Shown here in pieces: positions 17,590 to 63,900 of a stretch of 64,000 nucleotides of DNA; positions within the stretch are counted from its first letter, which is position 1; the number at the start of each line of letters is the position of its first letter. A model generated the notes under the pieces. The model searched no databases. It was not told the DNA's origin and saw nothing but the letters and a program-made list of their open reading frames with translations. Origin of the DNA: Lepidodermella squamata (Eukaryota > Animalia > Gastrotricha); contig JBLDXI010000028.1 of the NCBI GenBank assembly GCA_047495785.1, forward strand, positions 682,001-746,000, read 5' to 3'. Made by a program: the position numbers and the translations under genes.

Positions 17590-20500
17590 ATGTATGGACT
17601 GCTGTTGCAGGCTGCCCTCGAATTTATTTCGACCAAATTTTCGCTCGAATTAGCTCGCGAAATTTTAGAAGCCGCCGAAGGCTCAGAAGGTGGAAATGCG
17701 GCTGAAAAGTCTGACGTTACAGGTAAAATTAAAACTTGAATTCAACCAATTTTTCGAATGCTATTTTCATTTTATTTTTATATAATTAAGGAGGAAGTGC
17801 TGGTACAGTTCGAACAGTTCGAGCCGGCTTCGCTGTTCATCAGCTGTACAGTGATAAATTGCTGTCACGCTTGGCTAAAGCTACGGCCGACCTCACCGGA
17901 ATGTCCCTAGATTCGGTCCTCGAGCAACTCGGCCAGTTTTTCGTGCGATTCTCCCGCCAGAGCGGCTACGACAGCTTGTTACGCTTGATTGGCCGCAATT
18001 TACGCGAATTTATCATGGGCCTTGATAATTTGCACGAATATTTCCGCGGAACTTACCCGAAAATCAAGCCGCCTTCATTTATTGTTTTACAAGAGGACGC
18101 TGATGGTTAGAGAAATAATGTTAGGATTTAAAAATTTAATTTTTTTTAAATAATAGGAATGCTGATCTGCTACCGATCACCAAGAGGAGGCCTTCAGGGT
18201 TACGTTATCGGTCAAATGAAGGAAGTGGCTCGGGTCTATTTCAACATTCAAATGAATGTTACCATCATTTCGGTATCTGAGGATTCAAGAGGTCCGTGGA
18301 AAAGTTTTCCTAAAACTAAAAAATATTTAAAAATATGAAATTTCTGTATTAATAATTGAAAAAAAATCAAATTCTCAATTTCTCATCTTTTGTCTTGGAT
18401 TTTATTTTTTATTAGGTCGCTGGTCTGCGAATATGAAGCTAGAATTTGACAATTCGACGCAATTTTTGCTCGAGGGTCAGGATGCGTTGAGCACCCTGGA
18501 CGAAGTTAGCGGGCGCATTCTGAAAGCTGAAATGATCATGGATTCAATTCCTTTCTACATCGCCTTCAATAAGGACATGGAGATAGTATCGATTGGGCAC
18601 GGCCTTAAAGTTGCCATGCCAACTGTTGTCGGCGATGATTTCAACGAAACTTTTGAACTCATCCGACCTGCGGTTGCTTGCAATTGGGATATGGTAAGAA
18701 ATTTTAGATTTATCACGGAAAATTTGATAAATATTCTTGATTATAGATTATGGACTACCGAAATAACGTAGGTTGACTATTGGACCGTGGAATTTAATTT
18801 TTAACGCCTTGATATAAGGTTTTTGAGATACAATCGCTGAAGGCTATCGAGCGTCGAGATAATAAAATGCACGGATCGACGATCAAAGACGATGAGGGTA
18901 ATTTCCCTCAAATTTAAAAAATAAAGAAAAATCGATATTTTTATACAGATCGATTAATTCCGATCCGATTACGAGGTCAAATGATTTATTTCAAAGAATG
19001 GGACTGCATAATTTTCATGTCCATGCCTGTTATTGAGAGTAAGAATATTTTTGAAAAAATTCTGAATTTTCAAAATATTTCCCACAGGCATGAGAGAATT
19101 GATTCAGCTTGGACTGAAAGTTCACGAGCTTTCAATGGCAGACAGTAGCCGCGACCTTTTGACCTTGAAGGTAATTAAACTCATTTTTGTCTGGATTTCG
19201 ACATATTTTTCGTATATTTTAGCACCACAAAGAAATCGGAAAGGATCCTCTTCTCATTCAGGAAGCGAAAATCGGAGCGAAACTCGATTATTTAACGAAA
19301 GAAGCAACGGGGTAAGAGCGATTTTCCGAATGAATCATAGTTTTTCAGAATTATGATTATTTTCAGGTTTAAATCAAAGCGAACCACCTTATTGGAAGAG
19401 GCCGTTCCTCGATTCTTGCTGAAGCATGTCAGCAGTATGGGAAAAACACAGGTAAACATTCACTGAAGCCTAAAATTTGAATTTTCAATTTTCGATCATT
19501 CGTTGATCAAATCCGCCCTTTTCTATAAATGATATGATGAAATGAAATTATTGGAACTTTCAATTTGATCGCATTTTGATATCACGAAATTATTGAAACA
19601 GAGTGCAGATACCGTAGCTATTCTGGTTCTGAATTTCCACCAATTGGACAGCATGTTAGGTCCTGGAGTTACTCCACGAGGTAAACACGTACAATATCCT
19701 CTGAAATTTCGATAAACTTGACTGATTTTGCTAGAAATCATCGGCATGATCAATTCAATGTCATCGAAATTCGACGCAATCGTCCAGCGATACAATTACA
19801 CGCGCGTTTTCACGGTTTCTAACGACTACACGGTCGCATTTGGCATGCCGTTGTTAAGTCACCTTCCGGCTAATTTCGCCATTCTCGTCGCGACAGAACT
19901 GTTCGATGCTGTTGATGCGGCTGGGAAGGAAAGCCTGGCGAAGACTAAGACAAATTTGAAGCCAGATGTGAGAATTGGCATTGACATCGGCCCAGTTGTG
20001 GCCGCAGTAATTGGTGTCACCCTGCCGAGATATGTCGTTTTTGGCAAAACTGTTACCGTTGCGAATCGATTGAGCCTACTCGCATACGTAATTTTACCGA
20101 ATTTCCATTTTATTTTTCCCTTTATCCAATTTTTTAATATTATTTTCTAGCCTAGAGAAATCACGGTTACAGGTCGCGTTATTGATTCGATTGAAAGTAA
20201 CGAATTCAAGGACGCTTATGTGGTCAATTTTATGAAAGAAGTTGAGTTCCCGGTAGGTGTCCAAGATCGAGATTCCTCCCTTCAGAGTCTTCAATTTTTT
20301 TGTATTTAGGATGCTATGCACTTGGGCAAAACTTCGATGTACAAAGTTGAGATGATTGATCGCAAAAAATTGACGAGAACCGAGCGGCGCGTCAAAATGG
20401 CCGGGGCCGGCGGTGGAGGCAATAAAGGCCTGCTTGATGCCCTGGAAAGTGGGTCACGTGCTACTACTCCCATGACCGTGGTTAGTGGATGATATCAAAA

Positions 20501-20933
20501 ATTGGAAAAATTATTGAATTATTCAAGTTCAATTTGAATCAGGAAAATTGAATTTTAAATTGTTGACTTTAAAATTGTTTCTGAACATTTCGAAATTCTT
20601 TCTTTTACATTTTCTTTTACATTTCTTTTAAATTTTTAGGATGGCAACGATGGAACTAAAACCCCCTTATCGATGACTTCTGGCACGCGAACGTCATCAC
20701 AAGCGTCGCATTTTGCCGGAAACCGGGCTTCATCTGGAGCCGGCAGTGTCCCGAATGGAGGTTACGCCCCTAGCAGTGCAGCCGGTAGCATCAAGTTCAA
20801 AATTACCCAAGTTCAGGAGGAAGGAGAAGATGATGACGACGATGACGATGACGACGAAGATGACGAAGATATGGAACGAGCGGCAAGACGCGACCTTAAA
20901 AGCTGCCTTGCTGGGCCGTGCAATGTCTCTTAA
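17590..20933 (+). CDS. Atypical soluble guanylyl cyclase-like protein (H-NOX, PAS/HNOBA, coiled coil, degenerate cyclase), Gyc88E-like, multi-exon
   Basis: MYGLLL start, GLDNLHEY (proximal His), YRSPR heme-binding motif, LRGQMIY, VRIGIDIGPVVAAVIGVTLPRY; ends in CNVS. Confidence 0.88.
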
Positions 20934-21615: not shown

Positions 21616-24600
21616 ATGCTGAAGTCTGAATCTTACGTTAAAGTCAAGAAGGAGCCAATTGGTTCCGGATCCTTCGGCGATGTCTTTCTCACGAAGTCAA
21701 TGCATTTTGGTGACAAATTGTTCGCCATGAAAAGGGTTAGCATCTCCAAGATCTTAACGTTGAACACGTCGGATCCTGAACTGCCACGAAAACTATTACA
21801 TTTGGCTGAGAAAGAGGTATAGACCTCTCTGTCTTGCAGCAACTAATAACTCATTCTTTATAACAGGCGGAGAACATGCGGCATGTGGAGTGTCAGAATG
21901 TAGTAACGGTTTACGACTCTTTCACAGGTACTTCCTTATTCAAAGGCTCAACAAATCGAATGAAGGGTTGGTTAAATTTATGATCTTCCAGAGTTTACTG
22001 GGACTGAGCAGGGTTACTTCTATACCATTATGGAATATTGCGACGGGGGCTCATTGTGGCAAGTGATTCAGGAAGCTAGTTTTAAAAACGAGCACTTCCC
22101 AGAGCTCACAGTTCAGTCATGGACAAAGCAAATGGTGGAGGCTCTCAATTTTATCCATCAACGTAACATTGTTCATAGGGACATCAAACCTGGCGTAAGT
22201 TGATTCCTAGATTAAAAATGTGCAGCTAGAAATAGGATTTCCGCCCGCTGCAGAACATGCTGCTCTCTAAAAATCGAAGAATTTTGAAGCTAGGAGATTT
22301 CGGGATAGCAAAGCACAAAGACGAGTAAGTTCACTCGAAGATGTCATGAACAACAGTGAAGCAAAATGCTATAAATCCAGAGTGACAGGAACTGGAGTTG
22401 GGACGTTCATGTTCTTCGCGCCTGAGTTTCGTCAGGGAGAGCTCTACAGCCCTAAATGCGACATTTGGTCTCTGGGAGCCACCATCTATCAGTTGGTGAC
22501 ATTTGATACCAGGGTATGCTTATCTATAATAAGTGAGCGTGTTATCTAAACAGGATATCATCTCTTGTGCGCTCCTCAGTTTGACCAGCCCTTTCAAGTC
22601 ACGAACTTTGGTTACCATGCTGATTTGGACGAGCTGATAACGAAGATGATGGCGGCTGATCCTGATGACAGGATAACTATGGCACAGGCTGCTGCCCATC
22701 CATTTTTGAGTAAGAGAATTAGAGAATCAACCATTTAAAAAGACCAATATCGAAGCAATATCAAATGCATTTTACCAACGCATTATTGTAGGGATACTTG
22801 AAAAGTCAAACCCGAAACGCTAATTCGAGAATACGTAATGTGAAGGGAAGAGGAAGCGTGGAAGATAGGGGTGGGGGCCATGAGACGTAGCTATGTCTCA
22901 TGGTGGAGGAGGATGGGAATAGGGAATAAGGAAAAAGGGAGAAGAGAAGGAGAGGAAGGGGAATTGCTGGAAGAGGTGTTGGGGTGGACAATCGATAGAT
23001 AGGGGCGAATTTCTTGGTATTTTATCATAGTGCATAGAGCTCAGTGTTTAGGAATCATCTGTTAAAAAGATATTCCTGAAATCCACAATATACTTGCGTA
23101 TCTCTTTGAAGATTTGCCATACATCGTATTCATCGGCGCCGTTGGAAGCGGGAAAACCACTTTGGCTGAACGATTGACGGGATACACGCTTGCCACCAGC
23201 GATTTCGGCGAAAGCGTAACTCGTGAAACCACTGTGTACACCCTGCCGGCTTTTGATTTCGCGGACACTCCCGGTTACAAAGCAGTGGACAAGAAACTTG
23301 ACCACGCAATTCACATCGCTAAAGCTCTAAACTATCGCCCAGTGACTCGAATTTTCGTTGTTTGCAAATTCGACAATCGCCTCGATAACATGCTGCACGA
23401 CGTGGCCTGTGTTGTAGATCCGTTGTCTGCTGATCTCAAGGATAATATGACAATAATAATCTCTTTTTGGGATTATGCCGACAATTTAAGACAGTCTAAG
23501 GAGGAAATTTGTAAACAGGTTGAACAAAAGATGCGTAACCGTTTTAATGTCGATAGTTTTCTTTTCGTCTCCAAATCAATGAACAACATCGAGCAAACTC
23601 TAATCGAGTTCTTGAGCCAGCGCAGTCTCGCCGGGGCCAAAAAGATAGCAATTACGGTGGATGACCTTTCTGTGTATTTCGACCTGAAGGAAGGGGAGAA
23701 GGATGTCCTCAGATCAGCCAACTACACGACATCTGAAGCAAGAAATTTCGCCAATAGCGCCATCGAGCAGGCCGAGAAGATTGAGAAACCTTTTGAACGA
23801 CAGGACTTCCTCTTCTCTATTCTGCAAGCCATGAAGAGACATTTCACTCAACTCATCGAGCTCTTCGTAAAGGCTAGTAACCTGGACGTCAGTCTGGTAA
23901 TGATTGAATGGGTGAAACAATAATTATTGTTCCTATGTTTTTTCTTCCTAATACAGGTTGAGGACTACTTCTGGGTGAAATTTGTCAAGGATGATGTTAA
24001 TAGGGTTCTCGATGGATTTGTCATGCACTGCCAACAATTCCGTAACTATCTGGAAGGAAGCGTGGATAAGGAACGGCCATTTAGGAAATGCCCTCATTGC
24101 GGGTGCATTTGGACTAGAGTCGACGGCTGTGATGGCCCAACATTTTGTGGCGCTGTACCTTCAACTTCTGCCTTCGGTGATGCTAAAGAGTTGATTGATT
24201 GGAAGTGGACGAAAAATCTTCGAAATGGACGTTATCAGTTTACAAAACAATCCACAGAAATCAAAATTCGTCCACGCAGCCAGCTTGGAAAGATAGAGTT
24301 TCGGAGAAATCAGCTCGAAAGCATTAATCCAGAAAGCGTCAGACGGATCTTCGCATTTTTGACACATAACCCATTCGATCCTAATGAGGTGCAGTTCGAT
24401 ATTGACACCCCTACCCTATGGAATAAGATGATAAACCTTGCTATGGAGTCTGATATTTATGACTCGTGGTTACGTTTCATCAAAAATTTGGTGGCTACGA
24501 AGGCGGGTCTCATCGTTTTGCGATGCCCTCTTAATGACCGGACGGCATGTCTCCTTCACGAGATAATCGATAACCTGTTCAATGCGCCTCTGACAGGCGA

Positions 24601-25000
24601 CAGTTTTTTGGACCTTCTTCGACGCTCCGACGGACTAAGCCATCAGGATGTTAAATTTCAAGAAGCGTTGAGCGATTGGTACAATGGATTCGCGTTTCTA
24701 GTTTCAGATGCTGAGAGAAACTCCTCCCGTTTGTTTCATGAAGCGTGTGAAGCATTAACTGCTCTTAACGTCAACTTGGAACTTACTGAAAAAGGTTACG
24801 GCTGCGGGAAGGAGATCACGTGGAATGACATGCCTTGCGTCGATGTTCCGCAGAATGTTTTCGACATGGACGAATTTGAACTGCGGCGAATGATTTCATC
24901 CGTCGCCATTAGCAACCCGGTCGCGGATCAGCGCATTCGGCGGGAGTTACTCGAACGCTTCGATCGCACCTGTGTGAATCGGGAAAGCTTTGTAGCTTGA
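21616..25000 (+). CDS. NEK-like Ser/Thr kinase fused to an AIG1/GIMAP-like TRAFAC GTPase and a Cys-rich Rcat-like region (multi-exon)
   Basis: Kinase motifs GSGSFG, AMK, HRDIKPGN, DFG, APE and DIWSLG at 21616-22709. GTPase motifs GAVGSGKT, SVT and DTPG in exon 23070-23896. Last exon 23957-25000. The phase-1 donor at 22710 matches the acceptor at 23069, and the GTPase exon has no in-frame ATG upstream of the P-loop. Confidence 0.75.
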
Positions 25001-27055: not shown

Positions 27056-30000
27056 TCAAGATTCACTCGAACCGTCGCCGTTCGAAGCAGCCGGCGGCGG
27101 CCGTTTAGTCGGGGTAGCGCCAGGGTACAACACGCTGTTCGGTACGGAGACAACGGCCGGCCCAGCCGAGCGCGACATGGTTGAGGTGTTCGAATTGAGG
27201 CCGCCAGCCGGGGTCGCTGAGGCGGAACCGGCGTGTCGCTGCCAGAATTGTTGAAACAGCGAAACAGCGTCGATAGAAACCGACAAGTGCTGCGTAGTCG
27301 GGATGGCTGAGAATCGTTTCGAGCCGGAATTGTACTTGAAAAAGTGTTCAATCATGGCGTTTTTTACGGTTTTCGGCCCGATGCCGTGGATGCGCTCGAT
27401 GACGGGCGCGTCCGGTTCGAACGTGTACAGCCCGCGGTATTGACAGCCGGCATCTCGGAATAAAATGACAAAATGGCGCGTATTCGGCGCAGCTTTTTCA
27501 AGCTCGTGCAGGGCCTCTTGCCGCGCTTTCGCATTCGCCCCACCTGCTAAGCAAGTGTCTCTTATCGCGTTGTAGACCAGATTTCGATTCGACTTCGCGG
27601 ATGGTTGAACTCGCAACGGCACGCTTGGGTTCACTAGAATAAAATAAATAAAAATGAATTTTCGGCGAATTTTTCCACAATATTAGTATGAATTAAACAT
27701 GTAGTATTTTTTCAAACAACATTTACACGCAAGCTGTTAGCTTGGTCCATCATGCGTCATCAATCCCGAGTTGCCGCACATATATACGTATGTAAGTACA
27801 GAAAGAGCAAGCCCGTTAGTTGTTATTATTACATTAATGTTAGTAATCCGTTGATTTTTACGCGTTCGCAGAGTGTTTCAACAGGTTTTAATGTTTTATT
27901 AGCCTCTCACGGACACACGTATATAGCGACGTGAAAACTAGGTAAATAAACCGGGACACGTCAACTCTGAGGCTAAGGCGCGAGGCAAGCTATCACAAAG
28001 CACATCAATTTTTCATTAGCTGACCAGGCTTGAATTAAAATTTGATAAATAAAGGAAAATTTATCGATTTATCACAAAATTTGAAAATAAAAATATTTGA
28101 TTTGAGGTCAGCATTTATAGTGCTTTTTAAGCTTTTCTATCCTAAAATATTTTCATCAATAGCCTCCTGACATTTTTTGCCGTGAATATAAATTATACTA
28201 TCCCGGCATCATAGCAATTATCCCGAGTAATGAAGGCCACTTATATTCAACAATACAATTACACCCGAGAGCATTTGTTTACCCTCTCTCTCGTGTTTTC
28301 ATGTACCAGTGACATGGAATGTTTACCGAACCCAACTGGTACATACATCGGAATAAATACAGTAGCCTAAACAAACGTCCTGCCCGCAATGTATATTATC
28401 TGCCCATACACAATTGAAACACTCTGTAGACGGCATTTCGACCAAAAGATAGACGTTAATAGAGATAGATAGATGATAGAAAAGTGGGCAAGCGGACACC
28501 ATGTAAGTATTGCGTTTTGTACACCGAGCCTGTGCGGTTCCAAGGCTGCGTGTGTGCTGCGGTGTGTGGTGGGTGGGTGGGTTACCTTTGAGTGAGCTCA
28601 AGCTCTTCGCCGAGCGCAACGTCGCGCCGAGCGGGCACAACGCGTCGTGGTCGTTCCACGGCCGCGGCAGTGCCAGCAACTGGTCAATCAGCGCCCGGCT
28701 GCGTGATCCTATAATCCGTTCAGATGCATGGATACATTCAAATTAAAGACGTGCACGTGCGCAATAGTTTGTTGGTACAAAAGTTTTGCTTGTTAAATTA
28801 TTACAAGTAATATTGAGAAACTGAAAATTGTGCAAATATCACAGACGCTGCAAGTCAAGACAACGTGCTCAGCACATTTTTGGATTCGAATTGGATTTGA
28901 TAAGAAAAAATCTCAATTTTGAGAATGAAAATTTAACAAAAACCCAACACCTCTTCCAAATTTGAAGAAAAAGTCCAAGTAAAAAATATGCAAATGCCAA
29001 CTATTTCCAATTTTTCAAATTATCTAAAATTTAGATAAAAATCATTCAATTTATCAAAAAATTAGAATTTTTGAAAAATGAACCAATTCATCTCATCTGA
29101 AAATTCCAATAAAATTTCCCAATTTTTTCATAAAAATCTAGAATTTCGATAAAATATTCAATAAATAAAATTCACAAATTTCTCATTTTTCCAATCCAAC
29201 TTAGGAAAAGAATTCCTGAAATCTTAGAAGAATTAATTATCTCATAGAGATTTAAGGCTTTGGAATTACAACTTAATCAATTTTCAAACTATTGAGTCAA
29301 AATTCAATTCGAATCCAAATAATTCTCGTGCTTGGTTGCAGAAAATTGTTAGAAATATCCTCAAATAAAATCAGCATAAAACCAACCTGTTGCTATACTC
29401 AACGTATCCCCGTCATCGTTACTCAATCCATCGAGCGTCGACGCGTGCCGACTCGACAGCGAACCAGGCGGTTTCGGCGCCCTGGCCGCAACCGGCGTCC
29501 TGCCCGGCGTACTCGGCGGAGAAGGCGCGGCCAAACCAGCCAAATTTTCGTGCTCGCTCTGCACGGCAAGAGTGCCTAAACCCTTCGGCTTCGGCCTCGG
29601 TTTCGCGCCGGCGGACAGCGCATCCCTCGATTTCGACTTGATCATCGTCCCAGACGGTGTCGAGCCGTTTTTCATCGTTGGAGGGGCTAGCCGCGACATA
29701 TCAATCGCCTCTTCCTCCGCTTTTTTCTTCGCCAGGTACTCCTCGAATACCTGCCGCTGCTTCATGCGATGTTCAGCCCGTCGCTTCTCCTGCTCGTCCT
29801 GCTTCAAGCGAATTTCTTCACGCCGTTTCGCCGCATCAACGTCTCGCTTCGATAGGCCACCGTCATTTTTGCCAACAGACGCCTGGGTTAGCTCGAGTTT
29901 TCGTTTAATTTCCAACTCGACGCACTTTTGCCGCCGTCTCCTTTCCAACTCATCGGCATCGATCATATCACCGACTACAAAAGCGACATTTTGCTGCTGG

Positions 30001-33000: not shown

Positions 33001-35091
33001 TCGTAAGCACTTCGCGACGACGCAACGACGTAGGGCTGATGCGGGTATTGCTGGGCGTCCTCGGCTGGAATGTAGTAATAAGCCCGGCGCCTGTTACTTC
33101 GGTGCTGGTGGTGATGAGAACGGCGGCTTTTCACGAACAGCTTTTTGCAGGAGCAAATCAGTTATTTCGATTGTTAGTAGGTTTGTTTCAAAATAATAAT
33201 AATATTTTAGGTGCAGGTCAATTGATTGAGCAAACATTCTCCGTGAATCACGATGCAAAAATTATCGATTGTTCAATCAAAAATCGAGGTTTTACAAGAA
33301 ATATGAACAATTTTGTTAATGCCCACTTACGCAACGATAGGCTGGGTAAAATGTTCCTTAAAGCTTACCAAGATTATTATTCGAAAACTATTTCAGAACT
33401 TCAGTAATACTAACATAGAATAAACTATAAAATCTTCGATTTTTAAACATCAATTACGAAACTTATCCCGGATCGCTTATTCATACCTCACCTCGGCTTA
33501 CAATATCAATTGGATCAAATTAAATATTAATGCTCAAAGGCATGAATCATCACCGATAGGCAGCTGAATCATCCAAAATCAATATGTTCGAAAATGTATA
33601 TATCCAAATAAGCGAATTTTCGTCTTTAATTTGTAGAAAATCTCTACTCCCTCAAAATCCAAGATGGCATTACTATTCAGAGAAAACCTCGATTTATGAC
33701 ATAAATCGATCTGAGAAATTTTGATTATCAGTTAAACTAACTTTTTTGCCCGGAGCCATAGCTAGAAGACCAGCATCCCCGCCATCCGGCTCATCTGACA
33801 CAACAACGACCGTGCCAGTCGCTTGATGATGCCGGCTATCGATTTCAGAAAAATCGCCCGAAAAATCGACTTCATTGAGCAGCATGCTGTGACCATTTCC
33901 ATTGCCATTAACGTAACCCGACTCAGATTTCGTCGAAGAAACATGTAGCTGGTTTTCGTTGTTACCGTTGTTGTTAGTCATAACAGGCGCTACGCGACTA
34001 CACGCGCATAATAACGGCGGGGCTGTGCATAAACTCGCGAATAAATCGGCTAGGAAGACGAGAACGTTAGCCTTGAACGACGAATGCATGTATAGCAAAT
34101 CTTCGAGGCGGAAGAAGTAGACAGCTTTATCGAGATGGTCTGAAAATAGCCGCACGATTTCGAGGTTAAAACACGAATCTGCAACGCCCAATGGGTCTTT
34201 TAGGGCCACGTCGTTGATTCTAAGATGATCAGGTGCGTAGTGGCAAATCAACGTGGCTAAGGCAGCTCCGTCGCTAATATCAGCCAACAAATCTTTCACA
34301 AGAGGTATTACAGGCGCGTTCGATTCGTCTAATCGAATAGTGGAGCGACCTGACTGCCGTGTTAACTGGGTCGCACGTTCCCGCCGTTCTTGCTCGAGGC
34401 GAGCTCGAACGGCGTGGCAGACCTTAGCAATCCACAGAAGTAGCGCGTCCTCAGTTGTACGCGGCTGTTCCAGCGGTGATAAATGAGCAATCAAGCGAAT
34501 AGCAGCCGTCACTCGGTCCGTGCTGAAGTTTTGCACCAGATACGCGCGCATAAACGCGTCAATCACCGTTTGATGCACTGAAGCTCGGATCGGGTTGTTC
34601 AAGGACAGCTGCGATTCTATCCTTGACAGGGTGTTTTTCCCTGAAGGATCGTCCGATAACGTGTAAAACCCACATTGGTGTAAAATAAGCAAAACTGAGC
34701 CATGAAGTGAAGCTGATCCGTGTGAATTCACATTATTAATGGCTTGCTGTCTTAAAATAATCCTAGCAGCATCGGCGTACGCTCTTCCTGATGTCAGCAA
34801 AGCTGCCACTGAAGGGTTTAATTCCAGCTGTTTACTCGACTCTTCATCAGTATATTGTTCGTCGATAAGAGGATCTTCGTATTCGAGAGGTACCCGGCCA
34901 TCAAAAACTTTCGATAGTAACCATGCGATAGAACAGCGAAGGCGAGACTGATGAGGAAAAATTGATTGAAATAAAATTAACTAAATAATTCACATCCTCA
35001 CCTTTTTGTGATTGTATAGCTCCAAAGGCACAATATCGGGAACCAAGCTATGCCTCAGTTCGTTCAACTGGAGGCGAAATAATTCTGACAT
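27056..35091 (-). CDS. CAMSAP: CAMSAP/Patronin microtubule minus-end binding protein (CH domain, coiled coils, CKK domain)
   Basis: N-terminus DIVPLELYNHKK/SRLRCSIAWLL; CH domain EDALLLWIAKV...DISDGAALATLICHYAP; coiled coils LQLERKRR and KRREEIR; CKK domain KSNRNLVYNAI...HFVILFRDAGCQYRGLY...FFKYNSGSKRF. Confidence 0.93.
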
Positions 35092-36324: not shown

Positions 36325-39051
36325 ATGGAGAACGAAGGTGGTTGGAGCAATTTTGACGACTGGGCTAAAGTTTCCTGTGATGATGTGGAAGACGAGCAGG
36401 TTTGTTGATAACCAAGCTAAGTGCATATTTCTTGAGGGTTGTTCTTCCTCTAGGGCTCATCGTCGTCCTCTTCAGCCGAAGTAATTGTTGATAAGAGTGC
36501 CGCAAGATTTATGCGCCGCGACAGCTCTGACTCAGTTGAAATTATGTCGATGGAAAATGACGAAGACGTCGTTGATACCAATAAGCTAATGATGTCGCAG
36601 AATTCAGACTCGGAAAACAAAATGTGCTGTTCGACCTGTTCGACTGTTATGAACCAGAGCATGACCTCATCGATTGTTCATGTCAAGATGGAGGAGATCG
36701 AGACTCAGACCGACGAAGATTTCAAGCAGCACATCGCAGCTAATATGCCTCCTGAGGTCAAGACCGAAAAAATGGAAGCTATTGAGGAGGAGGCGGAGGC
36801 TGCTACTCAGCTAGAGAAGGCTCTAGATTCGATTGCTGAGTATATTCATCGCCATGGCCATCAGTTGATTTTCATTCCTTCGCATTTGCTGTTTGCTTTC
36901 CTGGTTATAACCGCCGCTTATATGACCGGCGTAGTGCGTATCGACGGACTAGAACGAGCCAATGTGGATAGCGATCTCACAACTCAGCACAACATCGTAG
37001 AACATTTGTCGACGAAAACAACGGCAGTCACGGTTGGTCAACAGCAGCAGCAGCAAACGCAGCAGTTGCCAGTTGTTCGGGAGCTGCAGTCTCCTGAATG
37101 GTAGATTTTTGATTGCATAATTTTGATATAGTTTTCAAAAAATTTATATTCTAGGCTGGATCGTCTTGCTACGTTGCTGGAAGATGTTTCTGACGAACTT
37201 ATCGCCGTTGATGGGCAGATCTCAGCTGTCGAGAAGCAGCTCGAACAATTCGACGCGCAAGTTCAAACCTCGGCTAACAACAACAAGCAGCAAATGATTG
37301 TTACCGATGCTTACCGAGTTTTGATCGAGAAACAGCGCCAAGCCTCGCGAATTCTCGATAAGATCAACAGCGTTCTGAGTGTTGATCGTCAAGCGAGGCA
37401 AGAACCTGCTGCGTTACTTGATGTCAGGCTGAAGTTGGTCGACATTGCCGGTGATTTTGTCGCGCTGAATTCACGTATGACCGAAGTTACGATGGCCAAC
37501 AAGCGCCGTCATATCAACATGTTGAAGAAAGCGATTGGAGAACGCCATCGAGTTGAAACCGGAGTTATCGCATCGCTGGTTAATCGCATTCGTAGTGCAG
37601 TTATTCCCTCGCCTATTGCCGATGCGAGATCGCCGGCTTGTCGTCGTTTGATGTCTTCGGTCGATTCGGCCCTTGTTACCCCGAGTGATGTTGCTGAGTG
37701 CATTCAACGCCACATCGCATTGGCTCACCATTTGAACGCGACCATCGAAACTGAGAGACGCCAAGCCGCTCGTTTCCGTGATCGGGCGGTGATTTCTGAT
37801 CGCGTTATTTCAGATCTGCGGGCTGAGTTGGACTGGCTAGCGAATCGAACTGTTTTGCTGAAATCAGCTGAGAAGCCAAAGGTTCAGCAGGCGAAATCGT
37901 TGATCCAATGTCTATCGACTTGCTCGCCAGCAGTTTCGTCGTTTGCCGAGCTGCTTCAACGACCCGAGCACTGCCGAACCTGTGATTTGTTGGATAAGTT
38001 GTCGTCTCAGTTTGTCTCGCTACTCAACTCAATTTCAGCCGCCCTTCTCGAGGGATCGACCAAGGAGTGGTCGACTCGTGCTATGCTTGAAATGTTGTCA
38101 AACACCCTGGCGACCATCAGCAACCCTGCGAAACTGATGAATCAGCAGCAATCGAAACCGGTGTTTTCCATGCCAGTTGCTCCGGCAAGTAAGAATACAA
38201 CTTGGTCGAACCGCTTGTCAGAACGCATTGTTTCGGTGAAGCAAACGTTGTCTCGAGCCTACGACCGTCTCCGCCGCTCTGTTGTCGCCAAAGTTTGGTT
38301 CGGCCGTCCAGCGAATCACACGTGCTCGGATTACGACGACGCCTTCGAGCATTTGAAGAGCCGTGTGATGAAAATGCAACTGGACCGCTCGTACCACGAT
38401 GCTGCCGTTTTGACGGCTCTCTTCAACGAAATGACTGCTTTGTCGAGGGATGATAACCGGTGCCTTGGTTTCAAAGCGCGTCAATTCCTGGCGTGCCAGC
38501 TCGCATGGGCGCGCCGCATGACCGCGCTGTTCCGTCGCGATTCGTTGTGTTCAGAGGCTCTTCCTAAATCGTGTTCTTACCTCCAGTGGCAGCAGGATTT
38601 GATGGCGTCTGTTGAGCTGACTTCAACGCTAGCTAATTTTTCTGTCGAGTCGCGTGTTAGAAAGGCGGTGCCCGTTGCTAAGAAGGACCACGGCCCGCCT
38701 GGACCCGGTTCACGTGTTCTCATCGACAACAACTGGCAGTATCTGTGGTTGCTGGAATCAGCCAATCGTTTCCGTAAAGTCGCGGGTAAAAAGGGCGATG
38801 ATGGCTCTGAGGAGTTGGAACAGCACGTTTCTTACTCCTACCTCTCACCCCGCCGTGACATTATGGTCCTCGCGCCCGAGTTTTGCCGAGTCGGCGCTGT
38901 TTCAGCCTCGAACAAGGCCTACGGTCCACACGTGCCTCGTTTACGCCCGTCATTGCCTATCAAGAGCGCGAACGACGAAGCTTGTCAGCGGAGTCGCGAG
39001 TTGGTCGCTATTTTCGGCAGCGAAAATACGGCCATCCGCGTTCGAGCTTGA
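36325..39051 (+). CDS. Single-pass membrane coiled-coil protein, CCPG1/PBXIP1-like architecture; exons 36325-36399, 36454-37100, 37155-39051
   Basis: Phase-compatible GT-AG junctions; acidic N-terminus with DDWAKV and SSDSVEIM; transmembrane segment HLLFAFLVITAAYMTGVV; long heptad-rich C-terminal region. The family assignment is an inference. Confidence 0.7.
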
Positions 39052-60900: not shown

Positions 60901-63900
60901 GAGTCGCCGACGGTAAATTATCGCCTGAATAAAATATACAAATTATTGAGATGAGGACCGCAATATTTTAGGTTTTTTTCTGTTTCATGTCGACATATCG
61001 GAGTTATTTTTAGGGGTAAATTTGTAAATATTCAGAATAATACAGTTCAATTTTTTTCTGGGTCATTTTTTGATTAAGAATTGATTAGGAAATTCTGTCA
61101 AGAATTCGAGCTTCCAATTGCATAGCTCCGGTAGTAGATTTTCCCATTGCTCAAAATCTTGTTCTCAGTTGTTCTACCAATTTTGGGTATTGATTTTTCT
61201 TCATTTTTTTTACCTGAAAATGAGTCCAAGCGCTCGAGACCAGCGAGCGGTGGCGGTGGCATTTTGTGTTTTTCAGACGAATTCCGCTGCCGGCCCTGGT
61301 TGGTCGGCGTCAAGTGCTGCGGTGGCATCATTGGCGGCTGTAGGAACAGCTCATCGTCCATTTTACCCCCGTGTCCTGGATCCATCAGAACCGCAGTTAA
61401 CGGCGTCATTCGCACCGTATTATGCTGCTGCTGTTGCTGCTGATGGTGATGGTTGACATCAATTTGTGGGGGAACCATTTCTTGCATCTGAAATAAAAAA
61501 ACAGGGATAGATCAGGGATAGGTAAACAGCCATGAATTGCAGTTGATTTTTTTAAATTTCAAATTCCCGATAAATTGCACCAAATTTCAATTCTTTCATT
61601 AATGCTCAAAATCGCGACTTTAAAATGAAAATTTCATCTTTTTCAATTTATTAAATCTCCCGTCATAAAATAAAATAAAAAATTGAACAAAATAACCATA
61701 CCTGCAAAGAATTGTCCACATTCGATTTCGATTTCTTCGCCGAACTTGCCTCATCAACCTGCATAGGCGAATCAGGCTCCTCGTCTGAACTCGAATCCGA
61801 ACTCGAATTTCGGCGCTGCCGCGGCGGCAACGGCTCCAAGAAACTCGCATCCGAGCTCTTCAGCGGCTGGTGGTAAGACGCAAGAACGCCAAGCCGCGAA
61901 AACCGCGCCGTAGGCCGCACGTCCAACCGCCGCGCGCAGAACCACGTCCACGAAATCGGGCCAGAATTGCGCCAACCCGACCCCGGCTCGACAATCTCCC
62001 ACGGATTCAACGACTGAACGCCCGCGATTTGCAGGCCCTGCTGTCTTGCGTTCGCACTCAGCCCCGTTATTTGGTTGCCCCGAGAGTCTAAAACCGCGCC
62101 GTACGGCTCCATGACGAACGCCTCGTAAAACTGACGAGACAGCGGCATTAGCCGGCGAATTTCCCTCGCAACCGGCGACTGACACTCGCCGATTTCTTTC
62201 TTCAACTTCTTAACAGCGGCGATATACACCTTCTTATTATCATCCCGCTCCGTGAAACTGTCAGTGCCAACCATGGTTGAATGGACGAAACACGTCAATA
62301 GGTCGAATAGCAACGCCTGTAACGCAGATTTCGTCTCGGAACCAGGGTTAATCGGAACAGCCACTTGATGAGTCAGCAATTGGCAGCAAACCAAGGCCCA
62401 ATCCGTCGCAGAATTCGGCTGGCGGAGAATTCCCGAGTCGAGAATTGACCCGACCAGGGCGAGGCGTAACCTCAGCGCCTCTTGCCTCAACGTTTGGTCG
62501 TCCCAATTAACATCGGACTGGGGTATCACCCCTGACGCGGTGAATGAGCACTGGACAAATTTTTCGAGTTGGGCGTATAGAACTTTAGCCAACTCATCGG
62601 CCTGGTCGCGTTTCGCAGCGACGAGCGACGCAACCAGGGTCAAAAACGCGGGATGAGCCACCTGGGCCATGTAGTCCAGCAGTCGATCTCTGTCCTTTTC
62701 CTTCAGTTTTCCAAACGATTGGGCGGGTGGGACTGTTGCGTCTAGCAATCTCCACGCCTCTCTCAGCACCCTAGATTGCATGCATTCGATCAGCGAAACA
62801 ACCAACGGCGCGATGAACCACAACCGCTCGGGGAAATGAATGTCATTTTCGGCGAAATTTGACCTAGATTTCGACGCTGCGCTGAACATGTCCATCACGA
62901 CTGAGCCGAAATTGTCGAGAAATTGCTGTAGTTCAGTCGAACCAACCTGCCGGTAGACTAGCTGCAGCCTCAACCGGGTGCGGCGTAGACTCGACGCGGA
63001 TAACGGGTTCAGAATCGCGATTAAGGTGGAGCGTTGGCGCGGATCTGCGCCGGAAACTCGGACTGAACCATCGTCGCCCGTGCAGCATAGGCAATCGACT
63101 AAATGCCGTTGTTGCTCTTTCGTAATTCCCGAGTCTAATAACATTTCAGTTCGAAACAACAAATCAGGCTCGGCCAGGAGTTTACACCGTAAAAGCGGTG
63201 AGGTGGCGAGTGAATAGAACAACTCAGAGGCAATAGCGTCGCCAACTCGAGTGGTTTGTAGCGAAACTTTCGCGTTACCAGGTCCGGCAATCGGGGCTGA
63301 GTCGCCCAAATACAACAACGCCTTCAAAATCGATAACGTATAACTGCAGTCTGTTGTCGAAATATGCGAATTTAGCAGTAGAATATCGGCGAATGACATG
63401 CCGATCGGGCCTAGCTGGGCTGAACTTGCGTAGGCCTCACCAACCGGCCGGAATGACCCGGGGGTAGACTTTCCGTCTATAGCCGGGGTCGGGTATGACC
63501 CGACTAAGGCAAGTTCCGCTAGGCCGATCACATTCTTCAAAATCGCATAGGCCAGCAGGGTGCCTGATTCTAGGTCTTCCTCCATATCTTCCCGGTCTTC
63601 CATGCCCGATCCAGGGAAAACTGAGCTCGAATTTGAGGTAGCGCCCGGGGTTCGAGGCACGGTTAGGACTGGCAGTAGAACGAACCGGATCAGGTCGGAA
63701 AATGTGAAAATCGACCGGGCGAGAAGTACGCCGACGAAATTTGCGATGTTAACGCGAACTGCGTCTGCATTTCGGCTGTCCGGGCCGAGGTTAGGTCCGA
63801 CCAACATGCGGATGTCGATGAAGGCCTGTGTCATTGTTGGCTGTGGGTTCGTGACTGAGGAGGAACGCGAGAACGATGAAGAACCGCTGAGACGATTCGG

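Follow-up and report, generated by a model that had tools for sequence, protein, structure and literature searches.

The window, a stretch of 64,000 nucleotides from the gastrotrich Lepidodermella squamata (assembly GCA_047495785.1, contig JBLDXI010000028.1, positions 682,001 to 746,000 of the forward strand), contains a gene predicted to encode a protein kinase, a GTPase and, in its last exon, a small cysteine-rich module. The conserved parts of this module are two short motifs separated by a domain-sized insertion, and one of them resembles part of Rcat, the catalytic domain of RBR-type ubiquitin ligases.

A predicted kinase-GTPase gene ends in a five-cysteine module

The gene, as assembled from splice phase and paralogue synteny, has eight predicted exons with a total length of 2667 nt (889 codons). 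Its features, all on the plus strand, are as follows.

21616 to 22709, plus strand: protein kinase part, read from the sequence as six predicted exons (21616-21816, 21867-21927, 21992-22194, 22254-22324, 22381-22513, 22580-22709)
22710 to 23069, plus strand: predicted 360-nt intron between the kinase and the GTPase exon, with GTAAGA as donor (22710) and AG as acceptor (23068-23069)
23070 to 23896, plus strand: GTPase exon, an MMR_HSR1/AIG1-like G domain plus a helical linker
23135 to 23158, plus strand: P-loop GAVGSGKT (G1), with DTPG (G3) read from the translation ~45 codons downstream
23897 to 23956, plus strand: 60-nt GT..AG intron with an in-frame TAA
23957 to 25000 (coding to 24997), plus strand: last exon, an open frame of 347 codons plus stop
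24089 to 24151, plus strand: N-terminal piece, with the knuckle CPHC (C45, C48), the GC cysteine C58 and TFCG (C64)
24128 to 24130, plus strand: codon of C58, the fifth invariant cysteine, corresponding to the Rcat catalytic position
24197 to 24250, plus strand: beta-hairpin (residues 81-98) between the presumed third and fourth zinc ligands; this part of the insertion is family-wide
24275 to 24766, plus strand: all-alpha bundle, residues 107-270, whole only in own-genome paralogues
24794 to 24823, plus strand: distal piece GYGCGKEITW (C283, I287, W289), conserved in relatives

The kinase part begins at the ATG at 21616 and is complete, with GxGxxG, AMK, HRD, DFG and APE motifs. The exons were searched one by one, and in these searches the Pfam Pkinase model scored 33 bits on one kinase exon. 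The GTPase exon matched Pfam MMR_HSR1 with an E-value of 1.1e-7 (32.3 bits, cut-off 21.9) and gave weak matches to the NCBIfam models small_GTP and Era; its G4 motif is atypical, CKFD or SFWD. The frame of this exon is not open before 23066 and contains no ATG ahead of the P-loop, so that an upstream exon is needed. The junction between kinase and GTPase has phase 1 on either side of the predicted intron 22710-23069, and kinase exons were found directly upstream, on the same strand, at all four paralogue loci (contigs C1, C28 twice, and C34). Removal of the second intron (23897-23956) makes the translation collinear, residue for residue, with the intronless paralogues (..NLDVSL/VEDYFW.. vs ..NLDVTRVDDYYW..).

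The last exon encodes a lead-in helix, the five-cysteine module including the insertion and, at the C-terminus, a helical tail. Both cysteine pieces lie in one stop-free frame (24089-24823, plus strand), whose translation starts with CPHCGCIWTRVDGCDGPTFCG and ends with GYGCGKEITW. Counted from the exon start at 23957, the cysteine codons are those of C45 (24089), C48 (24098), C58 (24128), C64 (24146) and C283 (24803); C64 and C283 are exactly 218 residues apart (residues 65-282). An earlier note on this DNA, which was made from the letters alone, had described two such pieces 218 residues apart, and in this it was right. It had also called the motif stand-alone, which was mistaken, the motif being the last exon of a kinase-GTPase gene.

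The module is shared by a family of GTPases

The last exon had no match in Pfam or NCBIfam, and word-index protein searches with it and with the C-terminal region of the paralogue L003 returned no match. Relatives were found with profile A1, which was made from four distinct own-genome paralogue copies and was run exhaustively with HMMER against 1.84 billion cluster representative proteins. The search gave 287 proteins at E ≤ 1e-3, 32 of them at E ≤ 1e-10. Nearly all relatives have the arrangement CPHCGxVWxKVEGCDGxTTCG, a median of 54 residues, then GCGKxIxW, and the window sequence matches both halves of it (CPxC-x9-GC-x5-CG, then GCGxxIxW). In 120 of the best 150 relatives both profile regions were matched independently, most of the remainder being truncated fragments, and the family profile matched the distal piece alone with an E-value of 2.9e-7. 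The proposal of the earlier note that the two pieces form one module with a whole domain between them is borne out.

The gap between the pieces is usually 45-100 residues long, in one case 160. Because it lies at the same site across the relatives, the insertion site is family-wide, and what is special to the window is the length of the insertion. The earlier note had proposed a domain inserted in the loop of this motif; such a domain is present, but the site as such is common to the family and only the extra helical bundle sets the window sequence apart. In homologues lacking the bundle the alignment keeps the pieces and the cysteines, yet the insertion site is still filled. The bundle, ~165 residues long, was seen whole only in the five paralogues of this genome, which was searched as a 121-Mb assembly of 151 contigs. 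Four own-genome paralogues, 37-41% identical, retain both pieces. Two of the loci, L003 (G000:C28:366590-367546) and L004 (G000:C34:1354838-1355794), had identical scores in every search and lie on different contigs; the pair could stem from a recent duplication, or the assembly may hold two haplotype copies.

Conservation was read from HMMER alignments of the relatives, in which the column counts are somewhat biased, as the profile rewards the residues concerned. In the N-terminal piece C48, C58, C64 and G65 were found in 148/148 sequences, C45 in 147, T62 in 146 and W52 in 140. The spacing C-x2-C-x9-C with the G-C context was likewise present in 148/148, so the cysteine of the DGC string, which the earlier note had singled out as retained, is conserved in the homologues. 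The residue after C58 is D, E or N in 129/148 and the one after that is G in 135/148. In the distal piece G-C-G was counted in 118, 122 and 116, and the Trp in 120, of 123 relatives; past W289 the consensus reads xxMxPVxxPxE. Just one variant lacking a single cysteine was seen (C45G). The sixth cysteine, C50 in CPHCGC, is not conserved, the relatives having mostly L or E there.

A typical relative is ~440-460 residues long, with the P-loop at residues 10-35 and the motif ~290 residues further on. Among 73 full-length relatives Pfam assigned MMR_HSR1 to 45 and AIG1 to 14 and found single fusions to CBM20 and ART domains; kinase, RING, IBR, UBA, UBL (ubiquitin-like) and E2 domains were found in none of them. 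The fusions are represented by P0007, in which a CBM20 starch-binding domain precedes the GTPase and the module, and P0043 (Pelomyxa schiedti KAH3757173.1), in which GTPase and module are followed by an ADP-ribosyltransferase (ART) domain; the latter has the module gap of 160 residues. P0001 consists of three tandem modules without a GTPase, and a retrotransposon adjoins it on the contig (L044); the surroundings on the contigs of P0004 and P0001 were otherwise uninformative. Named sources of relatives include Physarum, Pelomyxa, Thalassiosira and a Calanus transcriptome, and an Atlas fold search also gave ciliate clusters, which are MMR_HSR1 GTPases of ~460 residues. The relatives thus span amoebozoans, diatoms and ciliates, plus this animal. 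These searches show the module to be the C-terminal end of a widespread, unnamed MMR_HSR1/AIG1-like GTPase family in protists; no model of it was found in Pfam, and full-text literature searches found no paper on it.

Predicted structure of the module

AlphaFold2 modelled the last exon of the window, on a 122-row alignment, with a mean predicted local distance difference test (pLDDT) of 84.6, and with values of 85-95 in both cysteine pieces. In this model a lead-in helix (residues 2-26) is followed by strands 42-44, 51-53 and 61-63 around the N-terminal piece, a hairpin (81-86 and 93-98), seven helices between residues 107 and 270, strand 286-288 directly after C283, and helices to the end. 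Strands 42-44 and 51-53 flank the first knuckle. Strand 286-288 has a pLDDT of ~92, and as every remaining strand sits in the N-terminal piece or in the hairpin, it would have to pair there, which would place the distal piece beside the N-terminal piece. The second knuckle would then be made by C64 and C283, near strands 61-63 and 286-288. Residues 279-438 of the compact relative P0002 were modelled with a pLDDT of 80.7 and the same strand order, the hairpin strands being 75-80 and 90-95.

Foldseek and VIA structure searches with the model of the last exon matched the insertion to generic helical bundles only. In the VIA-wide search with the compact model the matches were dominated by its two flanking helices.

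Resemblance to the Rcat domain of RBR ligases

When the compact model was compared with the PDB by Foldseek, the top four rows were RBR E3 ligases (RNF216 with an E-value of 1.1, HHARI with 4), none of them significant. The HHARI Rcat segment 338-376, which is contiguous and comprises 39 residues, superposes at 2.0 Å on residues 37..118 of the compact model. Since a contiguous segment is set against an 82-residue range, the match must skip the insertion. By range arithmetic, C43 and C46 of the compact model would correspond to C344 and C347 of HHARI, C56 (C58 in the numbering of the last exon) to the catalytic C357, C109 to C367 and W115 to W373. The Atlas fold search gave RNF217 IBR models with a TM score of 0.24, and BFVD gave giant-virus RBR ligases at ranks 3 and 9 (E-values 1.7-2.9).

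The likeness is also visible in the residue order. Six own-genome Rcat domains read CPxC-x5-K-x2-GC-NHM-x-C-x2-4-C-x3-F-C-W, the family CPxC-x5-K-x2-GC-[DEN]G-x-T-x-C ... C-x3-I-x-W. The raw probabilities and E-values of hhalign are unreliable for short cysteine-rich profiles (the spliced profile scored ~130 against any shuffled target), and for this reason only column-shuffle controls were used. Against a profile of the six Rcat domains the N-terminal piece aligned without gaps over 21 columns, with C58 on the Rcat catalytic cysteine, and scored 31.3; the shuffles scored 9.9 ± 2.9 and 0/150 reached this value. Against nine own-genome IBR domains the score was 15.8, barely above the shuffles (9.5 ± 2.3). 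Two relatives have an IBR-style knuckle, CPHPxC.

Other features of Rcat are lacking. No conserved Cys or His follows W289, where the second Rcat zinc site (C-x2-C ... C/H past F-C-W) would be. The Rcat His position is occupied by [DEN]-G, and the Glu position, three residues past the last ligand, is variable. RING1 and IBR are absent upstream, where the kinase and the GTPase are found instead. The Pfam model IBR (PF01485), which covers Rcat too, did not match the last exon, did not rank with the top families when 121 modules were searched, and had 40 matches in the own genome, none of them at the five paralogues. When the module profile was run against the genome, the five paralogues were the sole matches; an Rcat exon did not appear even with the threshold relaxed to E ≤ 10. 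RBR ligases act by means of a RING1, which recruits E2~ubiquitin, and of an Rcat cysteine with a Cys/His/Glu triad, Glu or Gln taking the last slot; RING1 for E2 recruitment and the triad define the group (PMC3940038). Prediction of a complex of the last exon with zinc and own-genome ubiquitin gave 0.29, under the 0.34 mark, a value that counts neither way.

Judged from the sequence comparisons and the models, the resemblance of the module to the first zinc lobe of Rcat is real but weak, and the module is not a member of the RBR family. The description of the motif as Rcat-like can be upheld for the order and spacing of the first lobe, the ungapped alignment of the N-terminal piece and the HHARI superposition, sub-significant as a fold match, but not for the second lobe, the distal half or the Pfam IBR model. 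The earlier note was correct in stating that the His, RING1 and IBR are missing.

On contig C15 of this genome (G000:C15:4031000-4095000) at least 8 IBR/Rcat matches cluster within ~65 kb, which points to RBR-type ligase genes arranged in tandem.

A probable zinc-stabilised head of the GTPase and the alternatives

We consider it somewhat better than an even bet (a probability of about 0.55) that the two motifs are the halves of one small module of the zinc-ribbon type, which probably binds a single zinc and serves the GTPase switch as its output or targeting head. In such a module the CPxC knuckle would give two ligands, C45 and C48, and the second 'knuckle' would consist of C64 and C283, its turn opened up by the insertion. 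A beta-hairpin insertion of 45-100 residues is common to every family member at this site, and the paralogues of this genome carry the helical bundle of ~165 residues in addition. C58 is part of VxGC[DEN]GxT, a glycine-rich loop that separates strands two and three. A single-zinc ribbon requires four cysteines only. One of the invariant cysteines is therefore 'extra', and the model-based mapping points to C58. A long helix leads from the G domain directly into the CPxC knuckle, so that presentation of the C58 loop would depend on the nucleotide state and perhaps also on the fused kinase. The likeliest use would be as a binding surface stabilised by zinc and bearing a reactive or regulated thiol; a thioester mechanism is conceivable, not the default. 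A zinc-stabilised output or binding head of this kind ranks as the most likely of the readings considered here.

Several results weigh against this assignment. The distal piece alone scored 9.0 with hhalign, the shuffles 7.4 ± 1.7, and 10/100 shuffles reached that score. PDB sequence searches with profiles A1 and A3 gave nothing meaningful. At the level of HMMER the module is linked only to generic zinc ribbons (UPF0547 in 21/121 modules, Zn_ribbon_3 in 12/121). Which four cysteines surround the zinc is itself deduced from models and alignments. In a different set, C45, C48, C58 and C64 might form the metal site as a knuckle of their own, and C283 would then be either unbound or a bridge to a second metal or within a dimer. 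The spacing C-x2-C-x9-C-x5-C would be self-sufficient, the weak Pfam matches involve short local ribbons and rubredoxin-like knuckles, and the five cysteines are so equally invariant that the sequence cannot pick the odd one. Three observations speak for the four ligands proposed above instead, and make this other set quite unlikely: in the HHARI superposition the lobe is complete only with the distal piece, the confidently modelled strand after C283 can pair only with the N-terminal piece or the hairpin, and the distal GCGxxIxW, which always follows the N-terminal piece, is as conserved as that piece. A redox or Fe-S sensor, in which the five cysteines would bind Fe or an Fe-S cluster, or form a reversible disulfide, and pass a redox signal to the GTPase, could also explain five invariant cysteines, and there were weak single matches in this direction (Desulfoferrodoxin_N in P0043, 1dfx in the Foldseek list). 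The spacing lacks an Fe-S signature, no match to an Fe-binding family was significant, and the best analogues are zinc sites, all of which renders a sensor of this type improbable. That the two cysteine strings are unrelated and fell by chance into a non-coding or decaying frame is refuted by the intact frame, the confident models and the preservation of both pieces in 120/150 relatives and in all own-genome paralogues.

A further alternative, close to the proposal of the earlier note, is that the module is a minimal, RING1-less Rcat, in which C58 would take ubiquitin or a UBL from an E2 as a thioester and pass it on, the GTPase and the kinase acting as the gate in a manner conceptually like RNF213. 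The invariance of C58, which a ribbon with one zinc would not require, agrees with this idea, as does its alignment with the Rcat catalytic cysteine both by hhalign and, by range arithmetic, in the HHARI superposition. So do the residue order shared with the own-genome Rcats (K six residues past the knuckle, a G that precedes the Cys and, counted from the last ligand, a hydrophobic +4 and an aromatic +6 position), the CPHPxC knuckles of two relatives and the recurrence of RBR ligases at the top of three structure libraries. Against it stand the replacement of the His two residues past the cysteine by [DEN]-G, the unconserved Glu position, the lack of a second zinc lobe, of RING1 and of IBR, the failure of the Pfam IBR model at all five paralogues, the count of 0/73 for RING, UBA, UBL and E2 domains, and the fact that every fold match is sub-significant. 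Because a contextual link to ubiquitin and key catalytic features are missing, ligase activity of the module is held to be unlikely and not established. The odds are equally poor for a founding one-lobe minimal Rcat, a RING1-less and GTP-gated module for the cysteine-dependent transfer of ubiquitin, of a UBL or of some other acyl group. It would occur in hundreds of protist GTPases and, coupled to a kinase, in this animal. In that case the paralogue-specific helical bundle could, by analogy with the Ariadne domain of HHARI and RING0 of parkin, be an autoinhibitory lid over the reactive cysteine.

Other candidates were set aside: the RsgA-type and YqeH-type zinc GTPases on their known motifs only, and MZB/DUF1998, which gave a single marginal match.

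Neighbouring genes

A Guanylate_cyc exon (adenylate/guanylate cyclase catalytic domain; 19728-20147, plus strand like the kinase-GTPase gene, E-value 4.9e-19) lies a short way upstream of that gene, and an acidic, D/E-rich open reading frame is located between the two (20673-20933). The minus strand encodes a CAMSAP/patronin gene, in which a CKK domain (27059-27634, E-value 7.6e-44) and a CAMSAP CH domain (33697-34809, E-value 5.4e-17) were recognised; this gene identifies the genome as that of an animal. Two long reading frames without a Pfam match at E ≤ 1e-4 (37174-39048, plus strand, 625 residues; 61666-63834, minus strand, 723 residues) resemble ordinary big coding exons of unidentified genes.

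Significance and comparison with known systems

The module is an unnamed domain, without a Pfam model, attached to hundreds of eukaryotic GTPases. If C58 were catalytic, the family would represent a new class of nucleoside triphosphate-gated, RING1-less ligase and would show what the minimal Rcat core is. If it is not, the module is still a clean case of a zinc knuckle interrupted by a domain-sized insertion, and the window gene a single-chain switch of kinase and GTPase with immune-type relatives.

Two known systems are similar to the window gene in concept only. RNF213 couples an NTPase to a transthiolating cysteine ligase; no sequence or fold match between it and the module turned up. ROCO proteins, such as LRRK2 with its Roc GTPase and kinase, combine kinase and GTPase in one chain; their domain order is the reverse, and the window gene has no COR or LRR. 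Among TRAFAC GTPases, those of the GIMAP/AIG1 and MMR_HSR1 types have the P-loop and DTPG of the window G domain, whereas the family described here carries a fixed C-terminal five-cysteine module ~290 residues past the P-loop. There is no solved close relative of this GTPase, the best PDB sequence match being GPN-loop GTPase 1 (E-value 0.0066).

The module itself shares the CPxC knuckle on a small beta sheet with generic zinc ribbons (UPF0547, Zn_ribbon_3, ribosomal bL32). UPF0547 and Zn_ribbon_3 are the only Pfam families with repeated weak matches, all below the Pfam cut-offs. Unlike these ribbons, the module has a fifth invariant cysteine, the highly conserved loop GC[DEN]GxTxCG and a domain-sized insertion in the second knuckle. 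With IBR/BRcat (PF01485) it has in common the general class of bilobed zinc-ribbon folds and, in two relatives, CPHPxC; the extra cysteine kept by the module is absent from IBR. The closest parallel is Rcat itself (HHARI/ARIH1 338-376, RNF216, parkin). In both, CPxC is followed after nine residues by G-C, in a loop between the second and third strands, then by two further cysteine ligands, after which position +4 is hydrophobic and position +6 is Trp, and the profile match of the N-terminal half exceeds both the shuffles and the IBR match. The module differs in having one zinc lobe only, no C-x-H and no conserved Glu, and five residues before the third ligand where Rcat has four. The 2-4-residue turn of Rcat between the last two ligands corresponds, in the module family, to 45-218 residues.

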